A stretch of DNA of 64,000 nt. Source: Selaginella moellendorffii (taxonomy: Eukaryota > Plantae > Lycopodiophyta). The notes under the pieces are model-generated. The model had not been told where the DNA came from, did no database searches, and saw nothing but the letters and a program-made list of their open reading frames with translations. Below are positions 1-34,736 of the stretch, one piece after another; positions within the stretch are counted from its first letter, which is position 1, and the number at the start of each line of letters is the position of its first letter. The position numbers and the translations under genes were made by a program. The stretch covers positions 1,292,330 to 1,356,329 of the forward strand of contig NW_003314283.1 of assembly GCF_000143415.4 (NCBI RefSeq), read 5' to 3'.

Positions 1-445
1 GAGGTGGGGCAAGAACATGACATTACGCGGGCGCGGACAGGTGTCGTGCATGCAGAGGCGAGAAATCTACAGGATACAGCCTGTAGGTCTGAATCTTGTT
101 CTCCATATTAACAGGAGTGTGGCCAGCAGGAGAGACTGCCATATGCAAGAAGGCCGCGGTTGAATGCGGCAAGTCACTTAGTCGACTGAGGGAGAAGATC
201 AGCAGCCACCTACTTAGCTAATCTTTTATTTCTGCATGGAGGCACCACCGCAACCGGGCAAGGATTGGAGACTGATGCGAAACTGCTAGCCGATTCTCTA
301 GTGATGGATCGAGGTTAATGAAGACATTATCTGTTGCTTTTCTCTGTTTGCTCCATTTCTCCTGAGCTCTCCATGAATTTTCCAAATCCGCTACCCTTCG
401 TATATTCTAAGCTCACCCAATAGCTGCGGCTTATTGTCAACCATT

Positions 446-1260
446 TCACGATACAGAAGGTACAGGAGCCGAAGATGATCTCATAACCGGGTTCATGTTC
501 CACTTGCACTCGCGGTCCACAGCAACGCCTCTTAACTTCTCTTCAAGAATGCAGCTGACCAAACCAGAGAAGATGAAATTGCTCTTCATGAACAAGGGGT
601 CCTCCCTTCTCCATGTCCTGCCTCGACTGAAGGATGAGACGTGGCCGCTCTTCTCCAAAACCCCGACCATAGCAGCCCAGTAGAAGAACAGTCTGGAACC
701 AGATTGCGAGGTGACAAGCGGAAGAAAGCTACATATCCGCACACAGCGTGAACAAGTGGCTAGAGCTCCAGGCCAATCCTTGTCAACAGCGTCACTTAAA
801 GCGCCCACAGCACCCCAGTCGATCAAAGTGTAGACTTAAGCATATGTTCCTAGGAACTATGTCGTTGTGGACGAGCCCGTGCTCTTTGAAAGCCCGAGAG
901 GTTGTTGCAAAGAGCTGCTCGCTCATGTCCAAACCGTCCACCGGGCCAAGGCTCGCTTGCAAGTCTGCAAGAGAGGCACCTGTATCAGCATGTTGACACC
1001 TTCCATAGTACCGGCTCGAGCTTCGATCGAAAAGCCACCACGTCATGCAGGAAGTCATGGCACAGCATGTCCCTCTCCGCCTTACCAGAGTTCTCTGTTC
1101 CATTCCAGAAGCATTAGGGCAGGGTGCCATCCTTTTCAAGGTGGAATCCAAAGTTTCCCCCGGTCTGTCCCGTTATGGTAAATTAGAATGCTCATTCTCA
1201 ATTATCTCAAGGAGCTCCTAAAGTTTTCTTCATGCTCCAGGTATTGCTGCCATTGGGATG
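446..1260 (-). pseudogene. Degenerate protein-kinase-like gene (atypical/fungal-type kinase fold), frameshifted
   Basis: A catalytic-loop-like 'HGLVHNDIVPRNICL' (ORF 792-1151) is followed in a different frame by a DFG-equivalent 'IDWGA' (ORF 446-826); there is no continuous ORF. Boundaries are approximate. Confidence 0.45.
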
Positions 1261-1473
1261 AGGAATGTAACTGCTTGAGTGAGCGTGACAAATATCAGTT
1301 CTCTGATCTTTCAATTTTGAAGTTCGTTAATATTGCAAGAATCATGAAAATCTGGTAAGTTTGTCTTTAAAATGAGAGTTTATGAGATTCGTTTTTCTGG
1401 TTCTTGGATGCAAGGTGCTTGAAGGCGAGCAGGAGTTCATGTTGCTACTTTTGCAAAAACAAAAGATGCCGAA

Positions 1474-1544
1474 TGCACTGCCCGGGAATCGAACCCGGGT
1501 CTGTACCGTGGCAGGGTACTATTCTACCACTAGACCAGCAGTGC
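1474..1544 (-). tRNA. trnG-GCC: tRNA-Gly(GCC)
   Basis: Reverse complement GCACTGCTGGTCTAGTGGTAGAATAGTACCCTGCCACGGTACAGACCCGGGTTCGATTCCCGGGCAGTGCA; perfect acceptor stem, A/B boxes and a downstream T-run. Confidence 0.96.
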
Positions 1545-1699
1545 TTAATTGATATTAACACTAAATTGTTTCCGAGCCTTGAGGGATATTATTTCCATCA
1601 TTGGTCGAGCCAAAGGCAAGGGGGCGGAGCACGCTCGGAAGCAGTCCTCCAGGTCAGTGAGATCGCTTGCGCATCGCATCGAGCTCATTCCCCATCGCA

Positions 1700-3141
1700 A
1701 TGAGCGAGCGCATTGTGAGATCTTTGATGCAGGCCGTGGTGACCGTTGACCTTGGCAAGCTCGTCGAGACGCTGCTGGATCTCGCTTACAGCGCCCAGCA
1801 TTGCAGGGAGAAATCCAAGACGCTGGCACTCAAGGTGGAGCTCCTCAGCGAGTCCATTGCGGAGCTCATCGAGAAGAGGGAGCACTTTACTCGAGAAAAC
1901 TTTGGAACACATGTTAGAAGGCTCGAGGTAAGATCTTGTTGTTCTTCCAAGATCTAAATGTTTTCTCTTCCCAGGTGGTGTTTAACGATGCTATCTATCT
2001 TCTCCGGAAGTATAGAAACGGTAGCATCTTCGTCAAGATCTTCAAGGCACCACACTCCGAGGATGGATTCGACTCTATCAATCAGAGACTGGAGATTTGC
2101 ATCCAGTACTTTGGATTCAGCCTGCAAGTCAGGAACGAATCCAAAGTCTCGAATCTCGCGGAAGAGAATCGGCAGCTGCGCTCCATGATCCAGTCCATTA
2201 TCCAGCAGCAGCAGGTTGATATGAGAAGATTGCTCAGTGGGGAGCTAAAGTCCGAGGAGAAAGATGCGGTGAACGCGATGCTGGAAGGACTAACTTTCGA
2301 CGACGATGACGAGGTTTATGACGAACACACGCTGTGTGCCACTCTCGAACAGCCTGGTTCTTCTTCCGCAACGCGAGTTCTACTCTTATACTCGGAGGAT
2401 CTTGGAGAGACAGAGCTGGCCATTCTCAAGCGGCTCTCAGAGTCTCACGTCAACATTCTCCAGTTCTTTGGGACTTATGTGGATGGCAAAACGAAGTATG
2501 CTGTCATGGAGAGGCCGGGGAAAGAAATCTCGACGCTGGACGAGTTTATACACAACAAGCCAGAGCTCAAGGATGGCCACTGGAGTCTCAAGAAGAACTT
2601 TGCTCTGGAGATCGCCATGGGGCTGCAATACGCTCACGCTGTGGGTGTCGTCCACAAGAACCTCCGGAGTCCAAACATCTTCATCGACGATAGCCAGGAT
2701 CTCCGCCCCAAAATATTTGGATTCAACCAAGGAAGGATTGAAGCGTTGAAAAGTGACAAGCGGCCGCAGAGCAAGGAACAGGTCCGGTGGAAGGCTCCCG
2801 AGATGCTGCCGCAGGCAAACCGAGCGATCAGGCGCCCCGAGTATAGTTACGCGTGTGACATCTTCTCGCTGGGAGTCGTCATGTGGGAGATCGTCACTTG
2901 GTCGTTTCCATTTGAGCAGATCAAAGGGGTGCGAGGCGTGCTCGAGGCAAGGGCAAGGAGGGGAATGACGCTCGATTTCTCGGCTCTTCCGCCGGGGGAT
3001 CGCTCCCCAGCGCTCCAGGCCTTCGTCCAGATTAGCATGGATTGCATGGAACAAGATAGCGGCACGAGGCCCAACGTTGACGAAGTCGTGGAGAGGCTGT
3101 CACAGCTTGTTCCAGAGGACATGACGTTTTCTTCTTTGTAA
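1700..3141 (+). CDS. MLKL-like protein: N-terminal helical bundle (HeLo/4HB-like), brace and pseudokinase, ~464 aa; exons 1700-1927 and 1975-3141
   Basis: A 47-nt GT-AG phase-0 intron joins an amphipathic helical N-terminus (LVETLLDLAYSAQHCREKSKTLALKVELL...FDSINQRLEICIQ) to a TKL-type kinase fold. HRD is replaced by HKN (HKNLRSPN), DFG by FGF, and there is no Gly-rich loop or VAIK lysine; WKAPE and DIFSLG are retained. Confidence 0.8.
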
Positions 3142-3549
3142 TCAATCGGCACGTAAAATATAAAATATAAAAATAAAATGGAGAAATGTGCTAAATTATT
3201 GTAGCATCGAAGATGGGGCCAACCATTTTTTGTCTTTAAAGAAGTCAAAACTCCTACTTGATGACTTCGAGCATATAGGAGGCTAGTTGGAATAGCCAGA
3301 AGATCATAGCAGCAAGAAGGAGCTTGCGACCTTCTTGGGCAAGTTGGGCAGAATCTTTCAAGGCAACTGTGAACATAATTGTCAATGTTGTGGACCACTT
3401 TCGAATGGATCAACTCCAAAACAGCTTTAATTTATTGCATTGTAATCCGAACTGAAGTTTTCTTGTGAAAAAATCAACTGTGAAAACGTGCTTTCTAGAA
3501 ACGGGGACTTCTTCTTAAGTAGAAAGAATTGTGGATCTTAAGTTTTGAG

Positions 3550-4659
3550 ATGTCGAACGGCAAGAAGTCTTTTGATCGATCTTTGCAGCCTTCAACTAGT
3601 GGTAGTATGAGCCAGCCACCATTTTCTGTTCAAGCTTTTCATGCAAACAATTGGTCAAGATTGCCAAGTTATGACACACATGCCCAAAACTTGAGATCAC
3701 GGAGGACAAGTGGTGATAACAGAAGTTTGAGTTTGCAGCCTTCAATTGGTGTTTACAGCAGACGAAGCAGTGCTTACCAGTTCTATACTAAAAGTGATGG
3801 GTGGGCTGGATCATGGTTAAATTCGTACAGATCTTCAAGCTTTTCAACTACCAGCAGCACTAAAAGTGGATCTTCTGGAATCAGCCAAATTTCCGTCCAG
3901 GCTGTTGCTTCTACCGGACCAGTTCTGGAAAGGAGTGGTCACATCTTACCAAGATGCGGATTTAGCTCAAGGCCTCCATCTTCTGTTTCCGTCCAGGCTG
4001 TTGCTTCTGTTCTGGAAAGGAGTGGTCACGATCTTGTACCAAGATGCGAATTTAGCTCAAGGCCTCCATCTTCTGTTCAAGCTTTCAAAGATGGTCCCAA
4101 CAACTGGTGGAGCCTAACCAGTGATGGATCTTCAGCTTCCAGCATGCGGTCGGTTCAGAAGTCCTCAGCACCTGACTCAGCTTCAAGAATTAAATCTGCA
4201 GCGTCTGTCCAGAACTCGGGCAGATCATTTAGACGTGATTTGGATCAGCTCACACACACAAGCAGCACCAAGTCTCAATTTAGCTCAAGGCCTCCATCTT
4301 CTGTTCAGGCTTTTAAAGATGGTCGCAACAACTGGTGGAGCCTAACCAGTGATGGATCTTCAGCTTCCAGCTTGCAGTCGGTTCAGAAGTCCTCAGCCCC
4401 TGACTCAGCTTCAAGAATTAAATCTGCAGCGTCTGTCCAGAACTCGGGCAGATCATTTAGACGTGATTTGGATCAGCCCACATACACGAGCAGCACCCAG
4501 TCTCAGTTTAGCTCAAGGCCTCCATCTTCTGTTCAGGCATTCGAGAGTGGTCGCAATAACTGGCCCAGTTCATCGGCTTCAAGTATTAGACCTGTCCAGA
4601 ACTCACATGGTTCGGGTATGAGAAGGCGGAGAAGGTTTTTTGTGTCCTGTTATTGTTAA
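3550..4659 (+). CDS. Orphan Ser-rich, internally repeated protein (369 aa) ending RRRRRFFVSCYC
   Basis: Uninterrupted 1.1 kb ORF; the repeat spacings are multiples of 3 and preserve frame; no recognisable domain. Confidence 0.5.
   Translation: MSNGKKSFDRSLQPSTSGSMSQPPFSVQAFHANNWSRLPSYDTHAQNLRSRRTSGDNRSLSLQPSIGVYSRRSSAYQFYTKSDGWAGSWLNSYRSSSFSTTSSTKSGSSGISQISVQAVASTGPVLERSGHILPRCGFSSRPPSSVSVQAVASVLERSGHDLVPRCEFSSRPPSSVQAFKDGPNNWWSLTSDGSSASSMRSVQKSSAPDSASRIKSAASVQNSGRSFRRDLDQLTHTSSTKSQFSSRPPSSVQAFKDGRNNWWSLTSDGSSASSLQSVQKSSAPDSASRIKSAASVQNSGRSFRRDLDQPTYTSSTQSQFSSRPPSSVQAFESGRNNWPSSSASSIRPVQNSHGSGMRRRRRFFVSCYC
3889..4560 (+). repeat. Tandem repeats inside the Ser-rich ORF (228-bp unit x2 plus a partial copy, and a shorter 90-bp-spaced duplication)
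   Basis: The anchor TTTAGCTCAAGGCCTCCATCTTCTGTT occurs at 3961, 4051, 4279 and 4507 (spacings 90, 228, 228). Confidence 0.9.
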
Positions 4660-4697
4660 AAAAACTTAAACAAGACTATCAAAGTCCATTGTAAATA

Positions 4698-5003
4698 TTA
4701 TTTCTGCAAGATTTTTACCCCATTTGTGCAGCTCTCCAGAGCAACAAGACAATGCTGCCACGCATCAACTGATGGATAGTTCATGTCGAGCAGAAACTGG
4801 ACCAGAGAATGGAGCTCATCACAAGAATCGCCATTTTCGTATCTCTCCACAAGCTCACACCTTGTTTCAAGCGCTGCCACTGCTGCAATCCTCTCATCTT
4901 CTGCCTTGAGATGGCCCGTTGCTGCTAGCGAAACTCCACAGTGAATTTGAGCAGACACAAGAAGCACTGTTAGTAGCAGCAACAAGAGCGCCTTGCTCCC
5001 CAT
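4698..5003 (-). CDS. Small secreted Cys-containing protein (101 aa)
   Basis: Signal peptide MGSKALLLLLLTVLLVSA, followed by a helical-looking mature part with Cys pairs (C-x11-C ... C-x6-C). Confidence 0.6.
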   Translation of the reverse strand: MGSKALLLLLLTVLLVSAQIHCGVSLAATGHLKAEDERIAAVAALETRCELVERYENGDSCDELHSLVQFLLDMNYPSVDAWQHCLVALESCTNGVKILQK

Positions 5004-5135
5004 AAAGGAAGAATGAAGAAATAGAACTCCTAACAGCTTTTTGGCTTTTTTCCTGGGCAGAAGTGCACATTTCAACCAACATTTAAGTCACCACTAAAGT
5101 TCAAGTTGTGTTTGTAAATTTCAATTAGTTCAGGT

Positions 5136-7355
5136 TTACAGAGTATACATGTTAGAGAGAAGAACATACGTAGCTGAAAATCTGGACAAGTTCCGATCGA
5201 GGATAGCCTCATTTGCAGCACATCTGGCACTAGTAACTTTCACATCTGGTTGTCTTCCACACGAACCCAGGAATGCCGCCACCGCCACCTTGCCCGGATC
5301 GTAAGGCATGCTATCAAACAGGTCCTTGGCCTCGTTCACAAGTCCAGCTCTACCAAGAACATCAATCATACAACAGATGTGCTCTTCCTTGGAAACCACA
5401 AAGTAATCAAACTCCATCGAGCCAAAGCATTGACAAGCCTCTTTCAAATGACCTGAGTGGCTTAATGCCGTAAGAATGCTCATAAACGTTACTTCGTCCC
5501 GACTAACACCCTCCAAATTAAGAATGTAGAGGAGAGTCTTGGGGCTCTGTGGATGCCGCGAATGGGCATATGCTGCCACCATGGCCGTCCAGGACAGTGT
5601 GTCTCTCGCGGGCATCTGGCTAAAAAGGTGCCACGCCTGAAACACGTCACCGTGGTGAGCATACGTGGCAAGCATGGCATTCCACGTCACCCCGTCCCGC
5701 TCCGGAATCCAGTCAAAGCTGGCCCTGGCCTCGTCAACGCAAAGACTCTGACCGTACGCCGCGATCAGCGCATTCCATGTCACCACGCTGCGGTACGGCA
5801 TCGAGTCAAACAGCTTCCTGGCCTCGTCAACCAGGCGAGCCTCGCCGTACGCACCAACCATCACGTTCCACGTCACCACACTCCTCAGCGGCATTGTATC
5901 AAACATGACACGCGCCTCTTCCAAATGGCCGCCCCGGGAATATGCCGAGACCATACTGGTCCAAGATACCAGGTCGTGCAGTGGCATCCGGTCAAATACC
6001 TTCTTTGCTTCATGGAGATTCCCAGCCTGGGCATATGCTGTGAGCAGAATCGTCCACGAGACCAAGTCCGCCTGTGGCATCTTTCTAAGTGTGCTGTCCA
6101 AAGATTCTATATTCTGGGCATGGGCATATGCTCTAAGCATCGCATTCCAAGAGACTACGTTCCTCTCAGGCATTGCATCAAAGATTCCCTTTGCCTCTCC
6201 CAAATGCCCGTCCTGGGAATATCCCTGAAGCAGCGAAGTCCACGACACAATGCTTTTGACCGGCGCAGAGTCAAAGAGATTTTTAGCATCCTTTAGATGC
6301 CCATTTTGGGCATATGCCTGTATCATAGTGCTCCAAGATACCACATTCCTCTCGGGCATGGAATCAAACACCCTCTTCGATTCTAGCAAATGACCCTTCT
6401 CGGCATAAGCTTTCACCATCATCGTCCACGAGACAATCGTCCTCTGTGGCATCCCATCAAAAGTTTCTTTCGCATCTTTCATATGTCCAACGAGGGCATA
6501 CGTCTGTGCCATGACCGTCCAAGTCATTACGTTTGGCTCCGGCATCTCTTTCAAGAGCTCGAGAGCTTTCCTGGGCTCCCCATTTTGCCTATACATAGTC
6601 ACCACCGTGTTCCACGACACAACGTTTAGCCTCGGCATTCGCAAGAACAGCTTCTCGGCCTCTTCGACATCGCCCTCTTGCGCATAGGCCCCGATCATCG
6701 CGTTCCAGGAAGCTATGCTTCGATCCTCCATCTTGTCAAACAATCTCCTGGCTTCCTGGAGCTGCCCGTTCCGAGCATACCCAGTGATCAAAGTGTTCCA
6801 CGAGACTGCGTCCCTGTCTCGCATTCCATCGAAAAGCTCCCTGGCTTCTCGTGTCCGACCGTCTTGAACGTACGCTGCGATGAGCGTGTTGCACGAGACG
6901 ATGTTCTTCTCCGGCATTCTCTGGAACACCAACCTTGCCTCGTTGGTGTGCCCGCTCTGGGCATACGCCGAGACGATGATGCTCCACGAGTAGACATTCG
7001 GCTGCGCGATGCTGTCAAACACCGCCCTCGCTTCCTGCAAGCTCCCAAGTTTGCCATACATCTCCACCAAAAGGTTCAAGAGGTACCTGTCCTGCAAATG
7101 GTGCTCGCTCTTCCGGATCCGACCGTGTAGCTCTCGGCCATGGAGGAGATTGTCACACGACTTGACGAGTGTTGCGAGCTGGAAGGCTCCCTCGGCTCCG
7201 CTGCGCTGGTCTAAAACTTCTCTGGCCAGCCGACCCCATTTGAGACCAGGAACCGAGCTTGCGAGACTTGTCAAGTAGTGATCCGGGAGTGTTCCCAGCG
7301 CCAGACCTTGGTGAGGACCAAATGGTATCCTGAGATCGCTGGCACTCAACGCCAT
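5136..7355 (-). CDS. PLS-class (SS-array) PPR protein with a truncated E domain and an N-terminal 'PFGPHQG..LGTLP..YL' domain
   Basis: Intronless ORF with a long run of 31-aa repeats (VVSWNxMIxAYAQxGxxxEAxxLFDxMPER). The E-domain segment ends ATYVLLSNMY and there is no DYW. First ATG at 7355. Confidence 0.92.
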   Translation of the reverse strand: MALSASDLRIPFGPHQGLALGTLPDHYLTSLASSVPGLKWGRLAREVLDQRSGAEGAFQLATLVKSCDNLLHGRELHGRIRKSEHHLQDRYLLNLLVEMYGKLGSLQEARAVFDSIAQPNVYSWSIIVSAYAQSGHTNEARLVFQRMPEKNIVSCNTLIAAYVQDGRTREARELFDGMRDRDAVSWNTLITGYARNGQLQEARRLFDKMEDRSIASWNAMIGAYAQEGDVEEAEKLFLRMPRLNVVSWNTVVTMYRQNGEPRKALELLKEMPEPNVMTWTVMAQTYALVGHMKDAKETFDGMPQRTIVSWTMMVKAYAEKGHLLESKRVFDSMPERNVVSWSTMIQAYAQNGHLKDAKNLFDSAPVKSIVSWTSLLQGYSQDGHLGEAKGIFDAMPERNVVSWNAMLRAYAHAQNIESLDSTLRKMPQADLVSWTILLTAYAQAGNLHEAKKVFDRMPLHDLVSWTSMVSAYSRGGHLEEARVMFDTMPLRSVVTWNVMVGAYGEARLVDEARKLFDSMPYRSVVTWNALIAAYGQSLCVDEARASFDWIPERDGVTWNAMLATYAHHGDVFQAWHLFSQMPARDTLSWTAMVAAYAHSRHPQSPKTLLYILNLEGVSRDEVTFMSILTALSHSGHLKEACQCFGSMEFDYFVVSKEEHICCMIDVLGRAGLVNEAKDLFDSMPYDPGKVAVAAFLGSCGRQPDVKVTSARCAANEAILDRNLSRFSATYVLLSNMYTL

Positions 7356-7469
7356 GCATGGTCTCTGGAGATCACTGAAAACTACGTTGATCTCTAGCCT
7401 GGAACTTGGAACCAAAAAAACGTTTCACGATTTATTAACATACCATTTACGTACAAAGCTTTCGTCGTC

Positions 7470-8369
7470 CTAGTCCTTGATACTCTTCTGCAAAGACAAT
7501 GAGCGAACAAAATGGTAAGAAATGGATCAAACGATTTGAGGGAGTACCTTGTCTTCGTCCTTGTGTTTCTCCTTGTCTTTCTTCTTGTCATCGCCCTCCA
7601 GCTTTGCTTCCTTCTTCTTATCTTTCATTTTCTCCTCCTCGTCTCCATGCTTCTCCTTCTTCTCCTTTTTCTCGCCATCGCCCTCGCCCTTGTCTTTCTT
7701 CTCCTTCTTCTCTTTTTTCTTCTCTTTCACTTCGTCTCCCTCGTCCTTGCCTTTCTCTTTCTTCTCCTTGTCTTTCTTCTCTTTCTTTTTTTCCTTCGAT
7801 TCATCACCCTCTTCTCCATCCTTCTTCTTCTCCTTGTCCTTCTTTTCCTTCTTCTTCTCCTTCCCTTCATCGCCCTCGCCTGATCCTTCCTTCTCTTTCT
7901 TCTTCTCCTTCGCGTCATCGCCATGCTTGTCCTTCTTTTTCTCTTTCTTCTCATCTCCCTTGTCATGCTCAGCCTCTAACGTTTTCTCTTTCTTTTCCTT
8001 CTTTTTTTCCTTCTCATCATCAACTTCCAAGCTTTTCTCTGTTTTCTCCGTCTTCTTCTCCTTGTGATCTTCGTCCACCTCCACGCTCTTCTCCTTCTTC
8101 TCCTTCTTCTCTTTCTTCTTCTCCTTGTGATCCTCGTCCACCTCCACGCTCTTCTCCTTCTCCTTCTTCTCTTTCTTCTTCTCCTTGTGATCCTCGTCCA
8201 CCTCCACGCTCTTCTCCTTCTTCTCCTTCTTCTCTTTCTTCTTCTCCTTGTGATCCTCGTCCACCTCCGCGCTCTTCTCCTTCTTCTCTTTCTTCTTCTC
8301 CATGCCACTGTCCTCCAGATGCATCTTCTTCTCCACGTCCACCTCCAAATGCTTCACTTGCTGCGCCAT
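7470..8369 (-). CDS. Lys/Glu/Asp-rich low-complexity protein; probable final intron 7488-7547 giving the C-terminus ...DKKSIKD*
   Basis: Long KEKE-type ORF with AAG/GAG codon bias and a GT-AG 60-nt intron near the 3' end. Confidence 0.7.
8030..8300 (-). repeat. 60-63 bp coding tandem repeat (KKKEKKEKKEKSVEVDEDHKE, about 4 copies)
   Basis: Near-identical units CTCCTTGTGATCCTCGTCCACCTCCACGCTCTTCTCC. Confidence 0.9.
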
Positions 8370-8379
8370 GTCCAAAGCC

Positions 8380-8641
8380 TGGAAAAGATCACAAACAAAA
8401 CTCTCAGCAAAGCATGGACGATCGAGCTCTCTATCAATTCCGCATTTTGATCGCCATTCCTACATAGATCTAACTTCTAACTGAGATCGATCATCGCTTA
8501 CCAAGAGATCCAAGGCCTAGAAAATCACAAACAAAATAAAATAATGGACGATCGAGCTCTCTATCAATTCCGCAACGATCGAATTTGATCGCGATTCCTA
8601 CATAGATCTAGATATTCTAGCTGAGATCGATCATCGCTTAC
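8380..8641 (-). repeat. Two tandem near-identical 5'-UTR introns separated by a 15-nt micro-exon (8502-8516)
   Basis: Both copies start GTAAGCGATGATCGATCTCAG and end TTTGTGAT-T(n)-YAG on the minus strand, and share ATGGACGATCGAGCTCTCTATCAATTCCGCA. Confidence 0.75.
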
Positions 8642-9469: not shown

Positions 9470-10797
9470 ATGACCAACGAGGGATTCTCCTCGCAAGGCT
9501 GCGACGATTTCCTGGAGCTCCTGCCGATTCTCCTCAACACCCACAACCAAAAGGAGGTGATGCACAGCATGGGGATGCTGTCCGCGGCGGCATCGTGCTC
9601 TCCCCAGGATCACCACGGCAATGCGGCTAGAAACGCTGCAGCACTCGCGGTGGCTACTCCGGACCATCAATCCAGCGATAGAAAAGAGCATGGCTCTTTG
9701 GACACTGTTGTTCATCCCGGGGACGAGCTCTATGGCAACCCAGTGTACAGTAGCGCGAGTTGTAACAGCTCCAAGACTCCAAAGGCTGGGAGGCTCAAGG
9801 CAATGGTTCCTCCGGCCTTGGGCGGAGTTCTCTCCGCCCAAGAGGACCTCGGACCCAAGAGTGGCGATGGCAAGAAAGCCACCGTGAAGCGCGATGCTTG
9901 CGGCGACGAGGTGAAGAAGCAGCAGCAGCAAGGTCAAGCGAGCAAAGTTTGCTCCAAGGCCGCCGGGAGCGCGTCCAAGAACCTGGTGTCGGAGAGGAAA
10001 CGACGCAAGAAGCTCAACGAGAGGCTCTACTCGCTGCGAGCAATCGTCCCCAAGATTAGCAAGGTTTATCATTCTCTCTTCTTGCTCCCCTAGAACACCT
10101 CTCGAGCCAGAGCTAGAACTTTCACTCTCTCGAAACGTAGAAACCTTTCAGGATGAAACCTTTGACTGGATTGGATTGCATTGCAGATGGACAAGGCGTC
10201 AATCGTGGCCGACGCTATTGATTACGTGCAAGAGCTGCAGGGAAAGGTGCAAGAGCTTCAGGAGGATGTGTCGAGCCTCGAGGCGGCGGAGAGGCGAGAA
10301 GTGGAGCTCGGGAGCGTCGTCGACGCCTGGAACGAGATGATCGTCAGTGACCACCGGGGTTGCAGCTATTCCACCGACGTCGACCAGCACTACGCCAAGC
10401 TGCGCAACCAAGACTCCCGCAAAGCAGTCGAGGTAGTTCTCTTTCTTTCGTATCCATTTACAAGTTTGTTCTTCTCCAGCTCGAAGTTTCCAAGCTCGAG
10501 GAGCAAGTGTTCTACTTGAGAATCAACTGCGGGAACTCGGACGGAGTTCTCATCCAGCTCGCGAAGGCCTTCGAATCCATCGGGCTGGAGTTTAGCAGCG
10601 CAAGTCTCTCGTCCTTCCAAGGCAAGATCATCAACAGCTTCATCGCGAAAGTAAGCTCCTTGCCATCTTATAGTTCCAAGATCTCCTCATGGAAACGAGA
10701 AAACTTTGTCCAGATGGAAGAATGGAAGTCCTTGCACACCGACGAAGTAAAGAAGATCCTCCTTGAGCTCGCTTCCAAGTATGGAATTTATGGCTAA
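9470..10797 (+). CDS. bHLH transcription factor, subfamily IIIa-like (FIT/DYT1/AMS type) with a C-terminal ACT-like domain; exons 9470-10063, 10187-10432, 10480-10650, 10714-10797
   Basis: SKNLVSERKRRKKLNERLYSLRAIVPKISK|MDKASIVADAIDYVQELQ; GT-AG introns keep the frame. Confidence 0.9.
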
Positions 10798-10908
10798 ACA
10801 AGATATGGTCGTTGTGCACGATCAATGGCTAGACAATCTCACTCTGTAAAAAGGTGTATCGCATCGTACAAAATAAAGTTGTGACTAGCAACGGTTAAAA
10901 TGCAAACA

Positions 10909-10980
10909 AGCCCCTAGCGAGGATCGAACTCGCGACCTTTCGCTTACGAAGCGAACGCACTACCACTATGCTATAGAGGC
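10909..10980 (-). tRNA. trnT-CGT: tRNA-Thr(CGT)
   Basis: Reverse complement GCCTCTATAGCATAGTGGTAGTGCGTTCGCTTCGTAAGCGAAAGGTCGCGAGTTCGATCCTCGCTAGGGGCT; anticodon arm TTCGC-TTCGTAA-GCGAA. Confidence 0.95.
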
Positions 10981-11013
10981 CATCCTTGCTAGGAACCCCA
11001 CCTTGGCCGGAAA

Positions 11014-12894
11014 TTAGTCGCGAGCTTCCAATGTAATGGTCATGGTCACCGTCTCTTCTCCACGAAGAACTTCGAGATTTACCTGAAAAGGTAAAAGCAA
11101 GAGTTTATGAGCACCTCGACTGCTTTCCAAAAGCTCTCTCTCTTCCTGTGCTAAGGAAATGTGAAAGTTACTTACAGTCTGCCCGACTTTGCAGGCGTCA
11201 AGAATTTTGTAAAGGTCGCTGCCTTTGCTAATCTTCTGCCCGTTCATGGACACGATAATGTCGCCCATGACAAGCCGGCCATAAGCGTCCCTCGTTGTCG
11301 ATCGCAATCCCTGCGCGGCGCCAGTCAGCTTTAAAGTTCTGATAGAAGAAGTAGAAGTTTCGTTTTAAGATGCTTACGGCTTTGCCAGCAGGGCCATCAG
11401 GAGAGGCACCGAGTACGAGGACTCCACTCACGCCAAGTTGCTCCACTGATTGGTCCGGCGCAAACGAAATCCCCAGAACCGGTCTCGTCACTTTGCCATA
11501 CTTGATGATCTGGTCGACGATGCCAGCCACCTCCAGACAAGAACCGAAGTTTTAGTTCTTTCACCCTTATGCAGCCGAAAGCAGCGCGAAAAACGTACCG
11601 TGTCAACGGGGATGGAGAAGCCAACGCCGGATGACGCACCTGATGGCGAGTAAATTGCCGTGTTGATGCCGATGAGGTTACCAGAGCTGTCGAGCAGCGG
11701 ACCGCCGCTGTTACCGGGATTTATTGCTGCATCGGTCTGAATTACGTCTTGTATTGGACGACCGTTTGCAGCAGATGTGATCTCTCGTCGCAGGCCACTG
11801 GAAAATGAAAGCATATAAAACTTTGCATCCGTACTGAAAAGAGGACATTTAATCTCACCTGATGACTCCCGTGGTTAGCGTGTGATCCAGTCCAAACTGT
11901 GCATATACGTAAGGACGTCAGGAAAAGATCGCCGAAAAAGCTGCAATCGAAGCTGCTTACCGGATTTCCTATAGCGAATACTTTCTGCCCAACGAGAAGC
12001 TCTGAAGAATTCCCCAGTGGCAGCGGTCGTAATGTTTTGTTGCTGCTGGCATCGATTTTTAAAACCGCAACGTCCTTGTCTTGGTCATAGCCGACTATGG
12101 AGGCTTCGTGCGTAGATTGGTCTCCCATTGTGATTCTATTCATCAAGAAAAGGTGAGGAGTTATTTCTTCTTCGTTGTTTGCAAGCGTAAAACACAACTT
12201 ACTTCAAGTCAGAGGCTCCTCGAATAACATGATAGTTTGTGACAATGTGCCCGTCTTTGTCCCAGACAAATCCCGATCCCGATCCTTGAGGGACTTCCAT
12301 TATGTCCGAGGTGAAGGCGTCTCGCCTGTAGCAACACAAAATGAAAAACGATCATTAAAACTCTTCGCGAACGAAAGCAAAGAATAGCGCAAAGTTTGCA
12401 AACCTGACTGCTAGATTTGTGATGTACACGACCGATGGAGTCGAATTCCGGAATAAGTTGATAGTCACAAGCTCATCCGACAGGAATCTTTGCGTTGACG
12501 TATTCACAAAAGCTTGCGCGTCCGCCGGTGTGATCATCACGGAGATCATAACAGCGAGCGACATGCACCACGTAGCATACGAATCCAGTTTGCCATCGCT
12601 CTTTTGCTGTGTCGATAGCCATCTGAAAATCTCGTCGCCCAAATTATTTTGCCGGGCTTGAAGATGTCTGATCTTGAGGAAAAAATTCGAAGAAGAAGAA
12701 AAATCTCGCCTGTCTTTGAGAATTCCGAAGCTCTTGCTAGATCCAGCAGCTGGAATGCCCTGCTCCAATTTGCTCACCACGACAATTCTAGAGCTGGAGC
12801 AACTAGAATCCCTATGTCGCCTCTCGCGCTGGGAAGAATCTAGGCCCTGGATGTTCGATGCGCTGGAAGAACAAGCTGCGGCGACGAGAGCCAT
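11014..12894 (-). CDS. DEG1: Chloroplast Deg/HtrA serine protease (DEG1-like), multi-exon
   Basis: Transit peptide; [22 protein letters not shown]; DVAVLKID; [19 protein letters not shown]; C-terminal PDZ domain. Confidence 0.93.
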
Positions 12895-13225
12895 GCGATG
12901 CGATCGCGGCAGCTAGATCCAGAGGATGCTGCCCCGGCCGATCGATTCGATGGATCGCGAAATTTCTACTTACAAGAGAGCGCTGCCAGAGAGGATCTTC
13001 TCCTAGGGCAAAGAACTCCGTGGCACACAGAAATACGACACATAGCGCTCCCATTGACACGCTACACCCTTGAGTGACGGCTGGGATACCTTTGAAAAGA
13101 CGTTGCGTGGGCATCTTACCGTTGGATTATGTGTTCCAGATGCCCGGGAAAAGAAATACTTTTTCTAATTCTATTATTTTCTGAGGGGGTTTAGTAAGGT
13201 TTGCCTGGAAAAGGGTTACATCACT

Positions 13226-13298
13226 TCCGTTGTAGTCTAGTCGGTTAGGATACTCGGCTCTCACCCGAGCGACCCGGGTTCAAGTCCCGGCAACGGAA
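13226..13298 (+). tRNA. trnE-CTC: tRNA-Glu(CTC)
   Basis: TCCGTTGTAGTCTAGTCGGTTAGGATACTCGGCTCTCACCCGAGCGACCCGGGTTCAAGTCCCGGCAACGGAA; T-runs downstream. Confidence 0.96.
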
Positions 13299-13804
13299 TG
13301 TACCCTTTTCAGGGCTCTTTTTTCATTGAGAGCTTTTTATGGCCGTCCAGCTGGACGGCTGGATTCAGGCACATTTGAAATTTTCCTAATGCACGGAATA
13401 TGCCGGAATAGTCTTATGGCCATGGGCTGATCGCCATGTATGCCCATGAAACACACACCACTAGGTTATTTTCTCTCGCCGGAGCCCCTGTTCTTCGTAA
13501 TCCCTGCTTCTCTCCTCGCTCTCCGTGTCTAGGGCGCCGATCTGATGCCGCGGCGGCGCTCCCGGTGATCTCCGTTTCAATTTGAGCACTCTTTCTCTCA
13601 CATTTGCTCGCCGCGCCGCGATTTTCCTTGCTTCCGGGATGCAGATCGGGCGGCGCAGCTTGTGCTTGACCGCTGGGTGCCGAAAAACGCAAGATTTGGG
13701 GTTGGAATCTTGGTAGGAGGCATTGCCGATCCAGGGTTTGCTGCCGCGAGCCAACAGGGTTTCCAGGGAAGGAAGCTTTTCTCCGCGGGCGAGGTATTCT
13801 GGAG

Positions 13805-14916
13805 ATGGAAGGAGGCGCCGTGGCCAATCCACGCACAGTAGAAGAAGTCTTCAAGGATTTCAAGGGGCGGCGAGCCGGGATGCTTAAGGCGCTCTCTGGA
13901 GGTAAGCTAAGCTCTCTCTATTTTTTTTTTCTTTCTTTGCGCCTCTTGCTAATCTTACCACTTGCGATTGTATGTAGATGTGGAAGAGTTCTACCGACAA
14001 TGTGATCCAGGTTTGTCCTCTTTCTTATCCTTTAGTCTAGTGTGGTGCTACTACATGTATATATAATGGTCGGGTCTTTTGTTTAAGTGTGATATTGACT
14101 TTGGCGTATGGTGTCACTTTTTCCTTATTGACTCCAGAGAAGGAGAATTTGTGCCTTTATGGTCTCCCCGACGAGACTTGGGAGGTGAATCTTCCAGCCG
14201 AGGAAGTGCCGCCGGAGCTCCCTGAGCCAGCGCTCGGTATCAATTTCGCGAGAGATGGCATGCTCCGAAAGGACTGGCTTTCGCTTGTGGCGGTACACAG
14301 CGATGCTTGGCTCTACGCAGTCGCGTTTTATCACGGTGCCCGCCTCGACAAGAGTGAAAGGTTGGTGCTTTTGTTAGTTTTGTCCGTCAGTTTGATTTTT
14401 TTATTGGTACTCGCTGTTCCTTTTTTCTTGTTAACGATTGTGGTAGATCTGAGATTTTTTCATTTTTCATTTGGTGCAGGAAACGACTGTTTGGGATGAT
14501 GAATGAGCTACCAACGGTTTTCGACACTGTCACTGGAAGGAAACCTGTGAAAGAGAAATCCAGCGTGAACAACAGCGGAAGCAAGAGCAAGACCTCTGTT
14601 GTCAAGGTGGGTCTTCGATCTTTCTCCTTTCTCTGTTTTTACTAACAGCTACTACCAGAACGAAGGCGGTGTAAAGTCGTCCAAGGCACCCCCGAAGGAG
14701 GAGGACGAAGCTTTTGACGACGAAGACGAAGAGCACGGTGACACACAGTGTGGAACTTGCGGGGGGAATTACACGTCCGACGAGTTTTGGATAGGCTGCG
14801 ATGTCTGCGAGAAGTGGTTTCACGGCAAGTGCGTCAAGATCACACCGGCCAGGGCGGAGCACATCAAAAAGTACAAATGTCCATCGTGTAGCAACAATAA
14901 GAGAGCTCGGGGATAG
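13805..14916 (+). CDS. Alfin-like PHD finger protein, multi-exon
   Basis: [17 protein letters not shown]...ENLCLYG...[30 protein letters not shown] (Alfin domain), plus PHD finger CGTCG...[15 protein letters not shown]...CPSC. Confidence 0.95.
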
Positions 14917-15602
14917 CCGCCAAAGGGAGAAGCTCGACGTAGCGTTATCCTTGGGAGCTCGTTTAGTTGGTCGGGGTGGGCATCAGTCATCACTTTGAAG
15001 GGCCGGTTCTGGACATCGTCTGTACTATTTATTTTCCTTCCTCCTCTTCCTTCATCGTAGTACCTTTTGCTTTCTTCCTTAGTTGAGCGCCCTGTAGTCG
15101 AGCTAGAATTTTCTCTAGCAGTGGTTCTGACCGATTTTCGTTTGTGTTCAGCTAGTGACAATCATGCATAGCGAAAAGGCCTTCACTATGCAAACCGGGC
15201 AATCTGGGTTGTCACCAATTGACATGAGCATGTTGTATACTACAAAGTGCTCAATACCAGGTTCATTTTATATTTATTTTCTTTCTCGTTCGCCCTCCTC
15301 TTCAGTATAATGTCGTGCGTGATGTCTTCCTTGTTTCAGCTGGTTTTAGTGGAATGGAAGTTTTCTCACTTGAGTTTTGCTCTCCGGTTTGGGTTCGCCT
15401 TTAAGAATGGTTTATAGTGTGGGTCATTAATCCTCTCCGTGCTCTCTTTTAGGACTTCCCTGTAGCTCTGCTGCTGCTGTGTTTGCCTTCCAAGAGGAGG
15501 GAGAGAGAAAAAAAAAAAGTGTGAGGAAAGACTGCGTCTTGCGTTGTTTGCGTAACTTTGTTCTGCAGTTAAGCTAAGGAAGAAGAAAATACAGTGGTTC
15601 GG

Positions 15603-16605
15603 TTAAAGAACGTTGGGAATAAGAGCCTTCCGAGTCTTTGGAAAGCCTTCCAACTTCTGAACATACCAGTCCCGGGTGGAGAAGCTCCTTGCAGTGAGGT
15701 AGAGCATGACGAACACCGCACAGGCAAGAGACATTGTTGTTTGGCTGATCATTGAAATCCCAATGAAGGTGCCTATTTCGAACAGGTACTGCGGGCACGC
15801 TACCTTGTCGAACAATCCTCCGTGTGGAACAATGTACTTCTTGGTGGTGATGCTGTCCCGTCGGGCCGTCGCAGCAAGCCCCTCGGCCGAGTTTCGTATC
15901 CGGGCAAGTATGCAGTGGTGGTAGAAGTTTCCAACTATTCCCACCATGAACACTACAACTCCTAACCACATTGTGTTGTACGTAGGCTGGTAGCACATCG
16001 CCTCGGCAATCTCTTGGGCGTAAAAGAGATTGAGTGACAGTAGCGCGAAAGTCAGCGACACTAACATGCTCGTCACTCCGCATATTGTTCCGGTATACTC
16101 ATGAAGAAAATTCACCTAGCAGTTGCAAGTAAGTTAGCTTTGCTTCAATGGAGTTTAGTTTTTCTCTCTTTACTGAGCGAGCTGCAATGCAAATAGGTAC
16201 CTCGAGGACTCGTTTGACGAAATGCAAAGTCATGGCTGCCGAGACGAGTACTATGCGCAAACTGGCACTGTTGTGGAGGCGGAGGTCGTATGCCCAAGTG
16301 GAGAGTCCCATCTCCTCCATGAACGTCGGTGCGTCAAAGTACTCGAGTTTGTGGAGCAAGAAAGCCGAGCAGAGCAACGCCGCAGGGAGGTAGAACATGA
16401 GCATTCCAATCTTGCTGGGCAACTGGAGGATCTTCTGCTGGCGACCGGCAAACTTGGAGTAAGGCAGTGCCGCGCCACGAAACTCCTGGAGCGAGAGGAG
16501 GACGCCGCCGACGAAGAGCAGCATCTCCGATCCCCATACGTACCTGGAACCCGAGCCCGTGAAGAAGAGGTACGAGGAATCCGGGCGGCTATCGCCGAAG
16601 AACAT
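15603..16605 (-). CDS. 3-oxo-5-alpha-steroid 4-dehydrogenase (steroid 5-alpha-reductase family) protein, 2 exons
   Basis: YSKF; HFVKRVLE|VNFLHEY; GNFYHH; YIVPHGGLFDKVACPQYLFEI; RKALIP. Confidence 0.88.
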
Positions 16606-16947
16606 CTCAATCTCTCACCGGGCTTCAGTTTCTTCCAGGAAATCGAGCATCACGGTCTCGTCGTCCAGTTCTTCGCGTCTTTCATCTCTTCTCGGCGGTG
16701 GTGGTAGAATTGCTCTTCGTCTTCGCTGGACAGAAGTTGCCAAACCGGATAATTCGGTGTCAAGGGACACACGGTGCATCGCTTGATCCGACGGTGGAGG
16801 ATGAGTCCCTCAAAACGGTAACTTGAAGGGCTGGAGATCTGTTTGGGAATATACTGGAATAATAATATTTAGGGTTCTTGCAAGGTCTTAGGGTTCTTGT
16901 TTATTTGGCTCTGTTGGTCGAATCGATCGATCGATCGATCGATTTCC

Positions 16948-17291
16948 ATGGCAACCACGGCCACGCAAGACGGCGCCGCGGCGACGGAGGAGGTGAAGCT
17001 CGATCTCTTTGAGGACGACGACGAATTCGAGGAGTTTGAGAACGGAGGTAAGCACGATCGCAATGCTAGGGCTACAGTCGCTGGAGCTGGATTCTTCCCC
17101 TTCTTTGATCTCCAGAATGGGACGACAAGGAGGAGGAGGACGCGCTCCAGCCGTGGGAGGACGATTGGGACGACGACGACGTCAATGACGATTTCTCGCA
17201 GCAGCTTAGAGCGGAGCTAGAGAAGAACGAGTCCCAGGCACCGAGCGACGATATTTCGCAGCAGAAGAACACCGATACTTCGAGCTCCTAG
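16948..17291 (+). CDS. DSS1: DSS1/SEM1 (26S proteasome and TREX-2 subunit), 2 exons
   Basis: LFEDDDEFEEF...WEDDWDDDDVNDDFSQQLRAEL. Confidence 0.93.
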
Positions 17292-17514
17292 GTAGTAGTA
17301 ATCATTCTTTCGTCCTCTCTATTCGTTTTTGTCTAAGAAGTCCTTGTCTTGGTGACAGATTGACTAGCCGATCTTAAAGCTCTTTGTCCTTTCCTGGTGG
17401 AATCAACCGAGCTCGAATTTTTTTTTCTTCGTGTTCTTACTGGCATCACATGTCAATGCTCCTTTCCTTCCATTGGGATTGCTGACTCTTTCCTCTAATT
17501 TTTTTTGGTTTTCA

Positions 17515-17780
17515 CGTCATAACGGGTGTGTTTTCACTGTTGTAGTTCTAAGTGTGCACACAGGGACGCGCATCACAACCAAGTAAGTTTGCGTTGTTTA
17601 TTTGGATTTGAATGGTCATAACGAGTGTGTTTTCACTGTTGTAGTTTTTCCAAGTGTGGACACAGCCAAGTAAGTTTGCTTTGTTCTGTAGTAGTTCTTC
17701 TAAGTTTGGACACAAGGAGGCTCTCCATCACAACCAAGTAAGTTCGCTTTGTTTATTTTGGATTTGAATTGTCATGGTTG
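17515..17780. repeat. Imperfect local tandem duplication (non-coding)
   Basis: TCATAACG(G/A)GTGTGTTTTCACTGTTGTAGTT occurs twice; CATCACAACCAAGTAAGTT...TTATTT(T)GGATTTGAAT occurs twice. Confidence 0.75.
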
Positions 17781-18739
17781 CGTGGCTCTCGGGCACAGTA
17801 GCGTGCGTTCTTGTGTACAGTGATTGTTTTCTCTTAGAGCTTTTAGCTTTAGATTGTCTTCCCCCGAGTACTTGGTTCTGATTCCTTTGTTCAAATGCTT
17901 GCAGGTTCTTGGTGGAGGAGCTGGGGAACGATCTATGTCTAGCCAGGTAATATGTTCGTATTCTATTACGTAGAGAAGAGGTCTTATTACTTAGCAAAGT
18001 CTTCCTGTTCTGTCCTCTTCTCCGCTTCTCCGTCAACTCTTGCTCTCTTTCGCCCGCTATCCTACGTGCACATTGATGTGAGCTGCGGACTGGTTCCAGG
18101 AAATCTATTCCCGTTTTGTTAGATATTTCAAACTTTGTCACAGGATTGGCATTAGTAAGCCCCTGAAATTGAGCCTGCGAGTCCCTTCAAACTTCTGAAT
18201 GGCTTTGTTTGTCCGCTTGTGGTGCGGTAGTACTCCTGTGATTTTTCAGACAGTGAATTGATGGCTTACCATCAGCATAGCTTCAAGTAGTAAAGCTTTC
18301 CCTTGTTGAAACTTCCGTGCCGTATGACCGGGTGTGGGCTTTAAATTGATCTTCTGAAGCGCTGTCACTGACTCTTCTGATCGAAAATCCTTGCAGCGTA
18401 TCTCTCCGATGTAATCTGGAAGGCATCAAGAGACGATAAGCTCAACGCAGGCTGACGAGATGGATGAACGAACGAGCGACGAACGAACAATAGCCCGCGG
18501 CCATCCTGTACTACCGAGAATGCAAAGGTCCGGACTTTCTCGAGAGACTAAACGTGTTCGTGATGGACAGACAGACCAGACGGGGAACAAAGAAGAAGAG
18601 ATAGATGCAAGGAAAGAAAGCAAAAGGCCCGGCTACAGACCAACATAAGTATGCTACTACTTATGTATTCACCTGGGATCGCTGTAATGGGCCGCAGCCT
18701 CGGGAAGAGTTCTCGTGATGTCGGAAGGAAGAAATCAAA

Positions 18740-19417
18740 TCAGAGGAGATGGGGGTCACCTAGTCCGGAAGGTGATGAAGACGTGGTTGCCCCGGACAGA
18801 GCTGAGCCTGAGCCTCCAGAGCCTTCACTAGTGGTAGCAGCAGCGGCAGCAGCAGCAGCGGAGGCAGCAGTGGAAGCAGCGGCAGCGGCAGCAACAGCTG
18901 AAGTTGCAGAGCCTGGCCTCTTACGCTTCTTCTTCTCGTAGGCAATGCCACGAGCCTTGGCTTGCATCTCTCTCACTTCCCGAAGATAGAGACGGACAGC
19001 TCGAGCTCCAAAAGGATTCGACTCGGGCTTTCCACCGTGCTCCTCGAATGCAGCTCGGAGCCTTCCAATGAGTGCGTCGAGGCTCCCCCAGGCTTGTCGC
19101 AGCGGGCAGGCACAAGGTGCTGGTGGGTGTGCGAGGCCGAAGAAGGGGCAGGCTGGTGCGTGGATTTTTGTCTTACCGAACTGATCCAGGTAGCGCAGGA
19201 ATTCCAGGACGTGAGCTCCGCTGCACCGGGAGAGCGCTAGAGGGGGCCGGTGGTTCTTGAGGTACTGGCCAAAGGTGTTCCAGTCGCGACGCTTCTGGGC
19301 CTCGTAGCGACTTGGAGGAGCTTGCTGGGACGAGGAAGCGTTTGCGTCGGCCCTGCTGGTAGACGCTCCACCACCGGCAACTTCTCCGTTCGATTCATCT
19401 GGTAACAAACCACTCAT
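18740..19417 (-). CDS. ALOG (LSH/G1, DUF640) transcription factor with a poly-Ala tail
   Basis: [25 protein letters not shown]...[20 protein letters not shown]...[14 protein letters not shown]. Confidence 0.96.
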
Positions 19418-22400: not shown

Positions 22401-22513
22401 GAACATAACTACTCATGTGGATTGAAGCATTCTCCTATATGTCTTTAAGCATACATTTGGATGGTGATAATACCTTTTAACAATTGCATTGTCTTCATCA
22501 AGGGTCATTTAAT

Positions 22514-23010
22514 TGTAAACAACCAAAGAGAACGACTTGAAAAACAATCTATAAGGGTTCAAATATAAACGGAAATGGCCCATAAATAAAAGTGCACCCC
22601 TTTTTCTAATCGGTTAAAAGTCTTGGGATATTTGGGGTTAAGTGTCTTTGGAAATCACACTATATGTTGAAATTGACATCTGGCAGGTTTAGTTTGCCTT
22701 CGGTTGGGCTTGACCCAAGGAAGGGTAGGGTGTTAAGAGAGCGAGGCTCTTGGGAGAGCTGCGGCTCTCAACTTTTATTCATGAGGGTGTGAACTTGTAA
22801 AGAAGTATAGTGGATTGTACGTAACCAAAGGAAACAATTTGAGAAACGATCCATAGAAATTTAAATATAAAGGGAAAGGATCCATAAATAAGAGTGCATC
22901 CCCTTTTCCAATCAATTAAGGGTTTTGGGATATTTGGGGTTAAATGTTTTTGAGTTTGAATAGTACTAGGATGGTTGACCTCCCGAAAAGTCCAAATTCT
23001 AGAGCTTACA
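22514..23010 (+). mobile_element. Cassandra-like TRIM copy 1 (5' LTR internally deleted; 3' LTR 22816-23010)
   Basis: TG...CA 195-bp LTR carrying a 5S-like segment at 22939-22993; flanks TTAAT/GTAAT (4/5 TSD). Confidence 0.85.
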
Positions 23011-23424
23011 GTAATTTGGTGTTTGCTTCCAAAGTCTTTTGCTTCGTGTAGAGCTAAATATGTCAAAGTGAATCAAGTTGGGAATGTTATGGTTAGCACT
23101 TCATCAAGATTTTATGGGATTTATGCATACATTTGCTTTAACCACTTTTGACAATACTCTTCAACTAGCAAAACATTATGATACATTGGCTCTTTCACTT
23201 CTCACAGTATGTCCTTCAACTCTACTTCTTATGGGAGATGGTCCTGTTTCAATGGAGGTTGATCTTGCTACTCATATTCAAGGACAAGGGTGAGGATATG
23301 GTCATGGTAATGATGGTTGCTACTAAGTGTGTGATGAGGTTGGTCACACATATTAGCATTATCGACATTTTCTGGATTGGTATCGTTTATTTCTTGGGTG
23401 GAGGCCTTGGCATCAACAATGTCC

Positions 23425-23610: not shown

Positions 23611-23711
23611 GATTATTTCTTTCAAGAGTATCATCAAGGTGTTCACTCGGCATCAGTTCACTCGGCACCAATTCATCCAATACTTACTTTCCAAGCTTAT
23701 TTTTATAACAA

Positions 23712-34726: not shown

Positions 34727-34736
34727 TAACATATGA

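Follow-up and report, generated by a model that had tools for sequence, protein, structure and literature searches.

In a 64-kb stretch of the Selaginella moellendorffii genome, here called the window, positions 1700-3141 of the plus strand encode a 464-aa protein in which a four-helix bundle, a brace and a catalytically dead kinase domain follow one another in the order known from animal MLKL. The gene is expressed and carries a single intron, and its product belongs to a family that we found in mosses, liverworts, lycophytes and ferns. We consider it probable, though well short of certain, that the locus is a real gene for an MLKL homolog in the animal sense, from a compact family inherited in seed-free land plants and distinct from the MLKLs of seed plants that carry the Pfam domain DUF1221; by analogy with studied MLKLs, the protein may act as an executor. 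A preliminary description of this DNA had proposed a compact, animal- or fungal-like MLKL in a seed-free plant, a probable lycophyte. The source is indeed S. moellendorffii, and the compact type was borne out: the N-domain matches the Pfam family MLKL_N and not DUF1221, no C-terminal extension follows the kinase domain, and the gene is spliced and expressed.

The coding sequence is divided into two exons of whole codons (76 and 389, including the stop). Exon 1 (1700..1927, +; 228 nt, residues 1-76) covers helices 1 and 2 of the bundle and the first part of helix 3, and exon 2 (1975..3141, +; 1167 nt) encodes residues 77-464 and the TAA at 3139-3141; between them lies a 47-nt intron (1928..1974, +; GTAAGA...TCCCAG). 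To examine splicing, assembled contigs from four public runs, each from a different study, were aligned to positions 1300-3500. Each run yielded one contig that extended from 1591 or 1624 to 1925, resumed at 1973 and ended at 3145-3212, and the intron was thus absent from the contigs of 4/4 runs; the joint 1925|1973 can be shifted by +2 bases with equal fit, giving the GT..AG borders. Because intron-free contigs with gene-sized ends are transcripts, the locus is expressed and spliced, with a word depth of 40-560 in ordinary RNA samples. The 5’ untranslated leader (1591..1699, +), which starts at 1591 (run X3) or 1624 (X1, X9, X10), contains no ATG, making the ATG at 1700 the first start codon of the transcript, and the 3’ untranslated region occupies 3142..3212 (+), within which the contig ends range from 3145 to 3212. 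The single 47-nt intron postulated in the preliminary description was therefore excised exactly in contigs of four studies, and the spliced protein, predicted there at about 464 aa, measures 464 aa from ATG 1700.

The public annotation of this gene requires correction at its N-terminus. NCBI lists a 513-aa S. moellendorffii protein named “putative kinase-like protein TMKL1” (P0001), which is 100% identical across exon 2 and is derived from a model with an upstream start and an intron near 1656-1742. This splice was seen in 0/4 transcript contigs. The first 60 residues of the NCBI model are, moreover, an antisense reading across a tRNA-Gly(GCC) gene (1474..1544, -) that is separate from the MLKL-like gene and lies 155 bp upstream of ATG 1700, and the relatives of the protein begin with M-x-x-E-K/R..., as the 464-aa model does. 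On the evidence of transcripts, tRNA overlap and homologous N-termini we rejected the N-terminus of the 513-aa model as unsupported and judge the 464-aa model to be the better one.

Fold and catalytic motifs

Structure predictions and searches were run on P0001:61-513, equivalent to residues 12-464, or on single exons, and the models cover these 453 residues. The Pfam family MLKL_N (PF22215; gathering score 27 bits) matched residues 31-141 (1790..2169, +) across the intron, scoring 47.8 bits with the N-domain alone and 45 bits with the near-full-length sequence; exon 2 alone gave 25 bits to the second half of the family. No Pfam match to DUF1221 (PF06760), HeLo or RPW8 was found in the Selaginella protein even at E 10. 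The full AlphaFold2 model, built from a 27-sequence alignment (predicted template modelling score, pTM, 0.77), comprised four N-terminal helices, a brace and a complete kinase fold, with the bundle at about residues 13-121, and the N-domain folded alone reached a predicted local distance difference test score (pLDDT) of 83.6. When this N-domain model was compared with 48,161 representative chains, mouse MLKL (4BTF) ranked first (Z 13.0, root mean square deviation [rmsd] 2.4, 100 aligned, residues 2-117 on 2-117) and the human MLKL N-terminal domain (6UX8) second (Z 12.6, 119 aligned, in register), the CC-R domain of Arabidopsis NRG1.1 coming next after the MLKLs (Z 11.2). Foldseek with the N-domain alone likewise placed the MLKL executioner domain and the NRG1.1 CC-R domain on top, at E-values of 0.08-0.8. 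A shape search of the ESM Atlas with the N-domain returned no MLKL cluster, its sole row above a template modelling (TM) score of 0.5 being the plant DUF7032-ARM family.

Since helical bundles reach a Z of about 13 fairly easily, the fold assignment leans on sequence-profile matches. A family profile of the N-domain and brace matched human MLKL N-terminal domains in the PDB at E 6e-10 and mouse MLKL at 2.5e-7, ADR1 reaching only 0.19, and no plant MLKL was listed among the matches of this profile; the N-domain as a single sequence matched nothing in the PDB, so that the family profile alone succeeded. The brace, a long and a short helix at about residues 131-175 (2137..2271, +; model helices 120-152 and 158-164, pLDDT 46-76), links the bundle to the kinase N-lobe. 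The four-helix bundle that the preliminary description had read from the sequence agrees with both the MLKL_N match and the mouse and human MLKLs found as best structural matches of the model.

The resemblance extends over the whole protein. A profile built from the plant family only retrieved full-length mouse MLKL (4BTF_A) from the PDB first, at E 9.9e-27 (profile 34-435 on chain 24-461), and 6LK5_A second, at E 7.6e-26, each in a single co-linear stretch; Foldseek with the full-length model also ranked 4BTF first, and in a language-model feature search the nearest entries were chordate MLKL clusters (0.97), with a DUF1221 streptophyte cluster at 0.95. The Selaginella protein shares with vertebrate MLKL (mouse 4BTF; human N-terminal domains 2MSV, 6D74 and 6UX8) the order of four-helix bundle, two-helix brace and tyrosine kinase-like (TKL) pseudokinase, a size of about 460-470 aa, the MLKL_N domain, the co-linear profile match, the best N-domain structural match, a Gly in place of the DFG Asp (GFN in Selaginella, GFE in animals) and an APE motif. 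It differs in that identity is only about 17-18%, in that the VAIK Lys, retained in animal MLKL, is missing, in that HRD reads HKN, and in that the partner candidate in plants is a linked kinase-ankyrin gene. The independent origin once suggested for the protein fits badly with a single co-linear match to mouse MLKL that runs from the N-domain through the pseudokinase at E 1e-26, and such an origin is unlikely.

The pseudokinase (about residues 173-461; 2263..3129, +) has a complete Raf-like TKL fold, of which 257 residues superimpose on B-Raf (Z 27.5, rmsd 2.5 Å); its closest solved kinases are B-Raf, RAF1, MLT/ZAK and CTR1, and Pfam Pkinase matched at 86 bits from profile position 47 onward. 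In alignment with relatives and active Raf-like kinases, the Gly-rich loop (GxGxxG) and the VAIK Lys are absent. HKN (2653..2661, +) stands in place of HRD, removing the catalytic Asp, and every member of the plant clade reads H-[RK]-[NSK] here; GFN (2719..2727, +), aligned to K-I-x-D-F-G, stands in place of DFG, removing the metal-binding Asp, and the clade reads GF[NFLY] with one AFF and one GLF. APE is retained in the Selaginella protein, and the alpha-C Glu in nearly all clade members (Asp in three moss sequences). Because the replacements run through the plant clade, the catalytic loss is old and stable. Earlier, the kinase had been called dead for want of a Gly loop and a VAIK Lys and for HRD>HKN, all of which the alignment upheld, and for DFG>FGF, which it did not: the aligned triplet is GFN, a register that is closer than FGF to the GFE of animal MLKL.

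Within the low-confidence activation loop (pLDDT <50 at model residues 318-330), Ser336 (2752..2754, +) is invariant in both family alignments, of 9 and 12 sequences; in P0001:61-513 numbering it is S325, and K327 is likewise invariant. Ser336 could be a regulatory phospho-site, a candidacy that we infer from this conservation. At most a few residues follow the last modelled kinase element, the structural match to B-Raf stopping at 450 of 453, and a Ser-rich C-terminal extension past the pseudokinase is absent.

Relatives in seed-free plants and fungi

Relatives were sought in an exhaustive HMMER profile search of 1.84 billion representatives, of which the best 150 matches were examined. The full-length matches at the top, few in number, scored 308-795 bits and were followed by a gap. 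Named members of this set come from the fern Pteridium aquilinum, the clubmoss Diphasiastrum complanatum (two tandem genes), the liverworts Riccia sorocarpa and Calypogeia fissa, and a second Selaginella locus. The set also includes several metagenome proteins, which we regard as moss sequences because one is 99% identical to a protein of the moss Sphagnum jensenii, a further family member located later, and the others group with it. Family members measure about 445-470 aa and are mostly intronless (Diphasiastrum, the Selaginella paralog, Sphagnum, and one metagenome contig grouping with mosses in the tree), for which reason the 47-nt intron at the Selaginella locus looks like a local gain. 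No second MLKL-like copy occurs in the 64-kb window.

The next full-length matches, at 140-172 bits, were all from Glomeromycota and carried Sel1 repeats, and the best 150 contained neither a seed-plant nor an animal protein. These fungal MLKL_N-kinase-Sel1 proteins, which are mentioned in PMC8778642 and include Geosiphon KAG9295780 and Glomus cerebriforme RIA96766, are the nearest non-plant relatives found, and share the MLKL_N domain and a degenerate kinase without a Gly loop. They differ from the plant clade in their length of 550-710 aa, in their C-terminal Sel1 repeats (for which the plant clade gave no match), in mostly retaining the VAIK Lys, in reading HHD or HRD and NFx at the DFG position, and in having no kinase-ankyrin neighbour at the two fungal loci examined. 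In Glomus cerebriforme, two MLKL_N-kinase genes lie 4.5 kb apart (L007: 10001-12282, +, and 16756-19417, +), pointing to local duplication of the fungal family.

In a maximum-likelihood tree that included Glomeromycota proteins, the plant clade received a support of 100/99. It grouped with a very long Geosiphon branch (length 1.6; support 95/89), the other Glomeromycota falling outside, in an arrangement flagged for long-branch attraction. As the approximately unbiased (AU) test did not reject monophyly of Glomeromycota (p = 0.067), nesting of the plant clade inside the fungi is not established.

Two groups of plant MLKLs have been described, and the compact family was compared with both. Those reported “across seed plants” (AtMLKL1-3, “clade 1”) carry a Ser-rich extension behind the pseudokinase (Mahdi et al., 10.1101/681015), and their N-domain is Pfam DUF1221 (PMC8559963, PMC10951266). 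Like the Selaginella protein, they come from plants, are presumably related to immunity and combine a helical bundle as N-domain with a brace and a pseudokinase; unlike it, they possess DUF1221 and the Ser-rich tail, and they have been described from seed plants, whereas the compact clade was found only in seed-free ones. The other group consists of MLKL_NTD-kinase fusions (Pm13, R3AK) of Poaceae and other monocots, which are reported to be monocot-restricted and to stem from several independent fusions (PMC10951266, PMC11297308, 10.64898/2026.08.07.743466). Their N-domain, labelled MLKL_NTD or MCAfunc, is likewise not DUF1221, and behind it lie a brace and a kinase, but the Pm13 kinase retains its key catalytic residues and is of the receptor-like kinase (RLK)/Pelle type, LRR_8B (PMC10951266), whereas that of Selaginella is Raf-like and dead and belongs to an old clade. 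Lacking both DUF1221 and a C-terminal tail, and with a dead kinase of the Raf-like kind, the Selaginella protein belongs in neither group as far as tested. The preliminary description, which spoke of plant MLKLs from seed plants with longer C-termini, overlooked the many MLKL_NTD-kinase fusions of Poales (PMC10951266; 10.64898/2026.08.07.743466).

DUF1221 gave no match at E up to 10 in the Selaginella protein, three relatives or the Sphagnum member, although very weak matches may be hidden by HMMER filters. NLRtracker, which by its published description tags MLKL by DUF1221 (PMC8559963), reports MLKL-kinases in Sphagnum, Azolla and Salvinia and none in Selaginella, Diphasiastrum or Marchantia; the signature behind the “MLKL” tags was not found in the supplement of Chia et al. 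2024. The DUF1221 and compact families thus probably coexist in mosses and ferns, and this coexistence, based on the NLRtracker reports for Sphagnum and on the Sphagnum compact protein without DUF1221, argues against simple orthology. There was no sign of nesting in the DUF1221 family, seed-plant MLKLs being absent from the best 150 matches and the tree having been built without them. Two Brassicaceae matches, P0249 and P0266, were rejected as MLKL candidates when they proved to be Usp-kinases. We found no description of the compact clade in the literature on MLKL with Selaginella, Marchantia or Glomeromycota, which reflects the limits of the library and is not proof of novelty.

Genomic neighbourhood and a linked kinase-ankyrin gene

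In four plant lineages, the gene of the MLKL-like relative is accompanied by an intronless kinase-ankyrin gene, encoding about 920-1030 aa with an N-terminal kinase and C-terminal ankyrin repeats (coordinates below are those of each locus). At the Selaginella paralog locus (L005), the kinase-ankyrin gene (2611-5580, -; 989-aa open reading frame, ORF) and the MLKL-like gene (6001-7338, +) stand head to head, 420 bp apart, and a moss-like metagenome contig (L001) pairs 711-3476 (-), a homolog of that 989-aa ORF with 35.5% identity over a 608-column alignment, with 6001-7356 (+). In Riccia sorocarpa (L004), 1-570 (+) accompanies the MLKL-like gene at 6001-8257 (+), under the consecutive tags R1sor_023912 and R1sor_023913; in Sphagnum jensenii (L008), where the pairing had been predicted beforehand, the two genes (5296-8391, +, and 13006-14352, -) are 4.6 kb apart. 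No kinase-ankyrin gene was present at the Diphasiastrum locus or the two fungal loci examined, and two further Selaginella kinase-ankyrin loci had no MLKL-like neighbour.

Members of the kinase-ankyrin family turned up in seed-free plants only. VAVK, the alpha-C Glu, HGDLK..N and DFG do not vary among them, so that they are probably active kinases. A kinase joined to ankyrin repeats is the domain layout of animal RIPK4/ANKK1. By sequence, a RIPK-like assignment of the kinase was rejected, since AMPK and TNIK, and not RIPKs, ranked first. It is plausible that this family is the upstream partner class of the MLKL-like proteins, which provides a lead on mechanism and not evidence on the window gene. 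In Ceratodon purpureus (L009), a TIR-NB-ARC-LRR receptor gene (14856-19046, +) lies 1.3 kb downstream of a kinase-ankyrin homolog (10001-13574, +), and no MLKL-like gene occurs within 10 kb of that locus.

On the upstream side of the MLKL-like gene in the window, a 119-codon ORF (792-1151, -) contains a stretch resembling a kinase catalytic loop, LVHNDIVPRNI, with no Pfam match and with broken frames beyond it, and may represent the decayed remnant of a kinase or phosphotransferase. Downstream follow a putative Ser-rich ORF of 376 codons (3529-4659, +) with internal repeats of about 75 aa (...SSRPPSSVQAFKDG.NNWWSLTSDGSSASS...) and no Pfam match, an intronless gene for a 759-aa pentatricopeptide-repeat (PPR) protein (5139-7415, -), a tRNA-Thr(CGT) gene (10908-10981, -) and a tRNA-Glu(CTC) gene (13225-13299, +). 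A long AT-rich stretch (20001-36000), with a G+C content of 0.28-0.37 as compared with about 0.50 elsewhere in the window, probably consists of repeats or transposon remnants.

Mechanism, alternatives and implications

If the protein works as the MLKLs of animals and Arabidopsis do, its bundle would be kept inactive by the pseudokinase and brace. Release would most likely come from phosphorylation of the activation loop, at the conserved Ser336, or from binding of a partner, for which the kinase-ankyrin family adjoining the relatives’ genes would be the upstream candidate. The freed bundle would then oligomerise and enter membranes as a cation-permeable lesion, leading to immune signalling or cell death. 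That a necroptosis-like immune pathway is involved, as the preliminary description saw implied, is a matter of inference.

Several observations weigh against this reading of the Selaginella gene as an executor of a conserved family. Its copy sits on a long branch of the tree (0.87) and has lost the second Cys of the family’s C-K-x-K-C motif (HCREKSK), and selective constraint on it is only moderate, the RNA-contig variants comprising 6 non-synonymous and 5 synonymous changes. A Z of about 13 is reachable between unrelated helical bundles, and the Foldseek E-values of the N-domain are weak. No kinase-ankyrin gene was found in its 64-kb window, a complex prediction between the kinase domain of the kinase-ankyrin protein and the pseudokinase of the Selaginella paralog scored 0.00, which is evidence neither way, and we know of no RIPK3 or RHIM partner in plants.

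The DUF1221 MLKLs offer one alternative, in which the Selaginella protein would be a seed-free ortholog of clade 1, diverged beyond Pfam linkage, the Ser-rich tail having been added later in seed plants; the novelty would then be small. The distributions look roughly complementary, the compact clade having been found in seed-free plants only and DUF1221 MLKLs having been described across seed plants (10.1101/681015), the bundle-brace-kinase layout with a pseudokinase is common to the two, and the DUF1221 streptophyte cluster came close in the feature search. We nevertheless hold such orthology to be quite unlikely, given a significant MLKL_N match beside no DUF1221 match even at E 10, a best 150 that included Glomeromycota and no seed-plant protein, and the probable coexistence of the two families in mosses and ferns. 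Convergence, with a four-helix-bundle domain and an unrelated Raf-like kinase joined independently in plants, has been proposed for several Poales MLKL clades, and reports from monocots describe multiple independent fusions of this kind (10.64898/2026.08.07.743466). Taken by itself, the Selaginella kinase domain does score highest with B-Raf and not with MLKL. For the Selaginella protein we find this very improbable: the profile match to mouse MLKL runs through the brace in one co-linear stretch, size and domain order are those of animal MLKL, DFG has become GFx, as in animal GFE, and the same layout recurs in Glomeromycota.

Horizontal transfer between Glomeromycota and an early land plant, in either direction, would replace descent from a common eukaryotic MLKL. 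That all next-best full-length matches are Glomeromycota, that the plant clade groups with the Geosiphon protein inside their diversity (95/89) and that most plant members are intronless all speak for it, as does the intimate symbiosis of the two groups since early land plants. The preliminary description had named transfer as a possible source; it is not shown by these data. The clade covers mosses, liverworts, lycophytes and ferns, so that any transfer would be ancient, and the AU test left Glomeromycota monophyly standing at p = 0.067. The Geosiphon branch is suspect for its length, the fungal proteins have Sel1 repeats, mostly the VAIK Lys, the HxD Asp and NFx rather than GFx, the tree lacked animal and basidiomycete MLKL_N-kinases, and neither fungal locus had a kinase-ankyrin neighbour, and we rate transfer as rather unlikely. 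About equally doubtful is a non-lethal role, as a scaffold, a guarded effector decoy or a protein that controls the kinase-ankyrin protein allosterically, with the bundle serving localisation. Good expression in ordinary RNA samples with no sign of lethality would suit such a regulator, and so would the Ceratodon kinase-ankyrin gene next to a TIR-NB-LRR receptor gene; but no part of the Selaginella protein is more MLKL-like than the bundle, which is also the membrane-acting module in every MLKL tested in the literature, and an expressed, autoinhibited executor is normal for MLKLs.

An MLKL homolog in the animal sense, inherited in an old, compact family of seed-free plants rather than acquired singly by Selaginella, is the explanation we favour. 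A bolder extension, which we put forward as speculative and on present evidence improbable, is that an animal-type MLKL executor and a dedicated, linked, active kinase-ankyrin protein form a two-gene death or immune switch analogous to RIPK3-MLKL, dating back to the plant-opisthokont split or to mycorrhizal exchange and lost in seed plants.

Current discussion divides plant MLKLs into the DUF1221 family conserved in seed plants, especially angiosperms, and young monocot fusions. To these two groups the compact clade of mosses, liverworts, lycophytes and ferns adds an old lineage as a third, whose profile and predicted fold are closer to vertebrate than to Arabidopsis MLKL, and thus bears on the long-standing question of whether the MLKL layout is ancient or has been repeatedly reinvented. 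It also supplies tractable bryophyte and lycophyte genes in which the control of a four-helix-bundle executor may be studied without RIPK3, and the recurrent linkage to kinase-ankyrin genes provides a concrete candidate for its activator.

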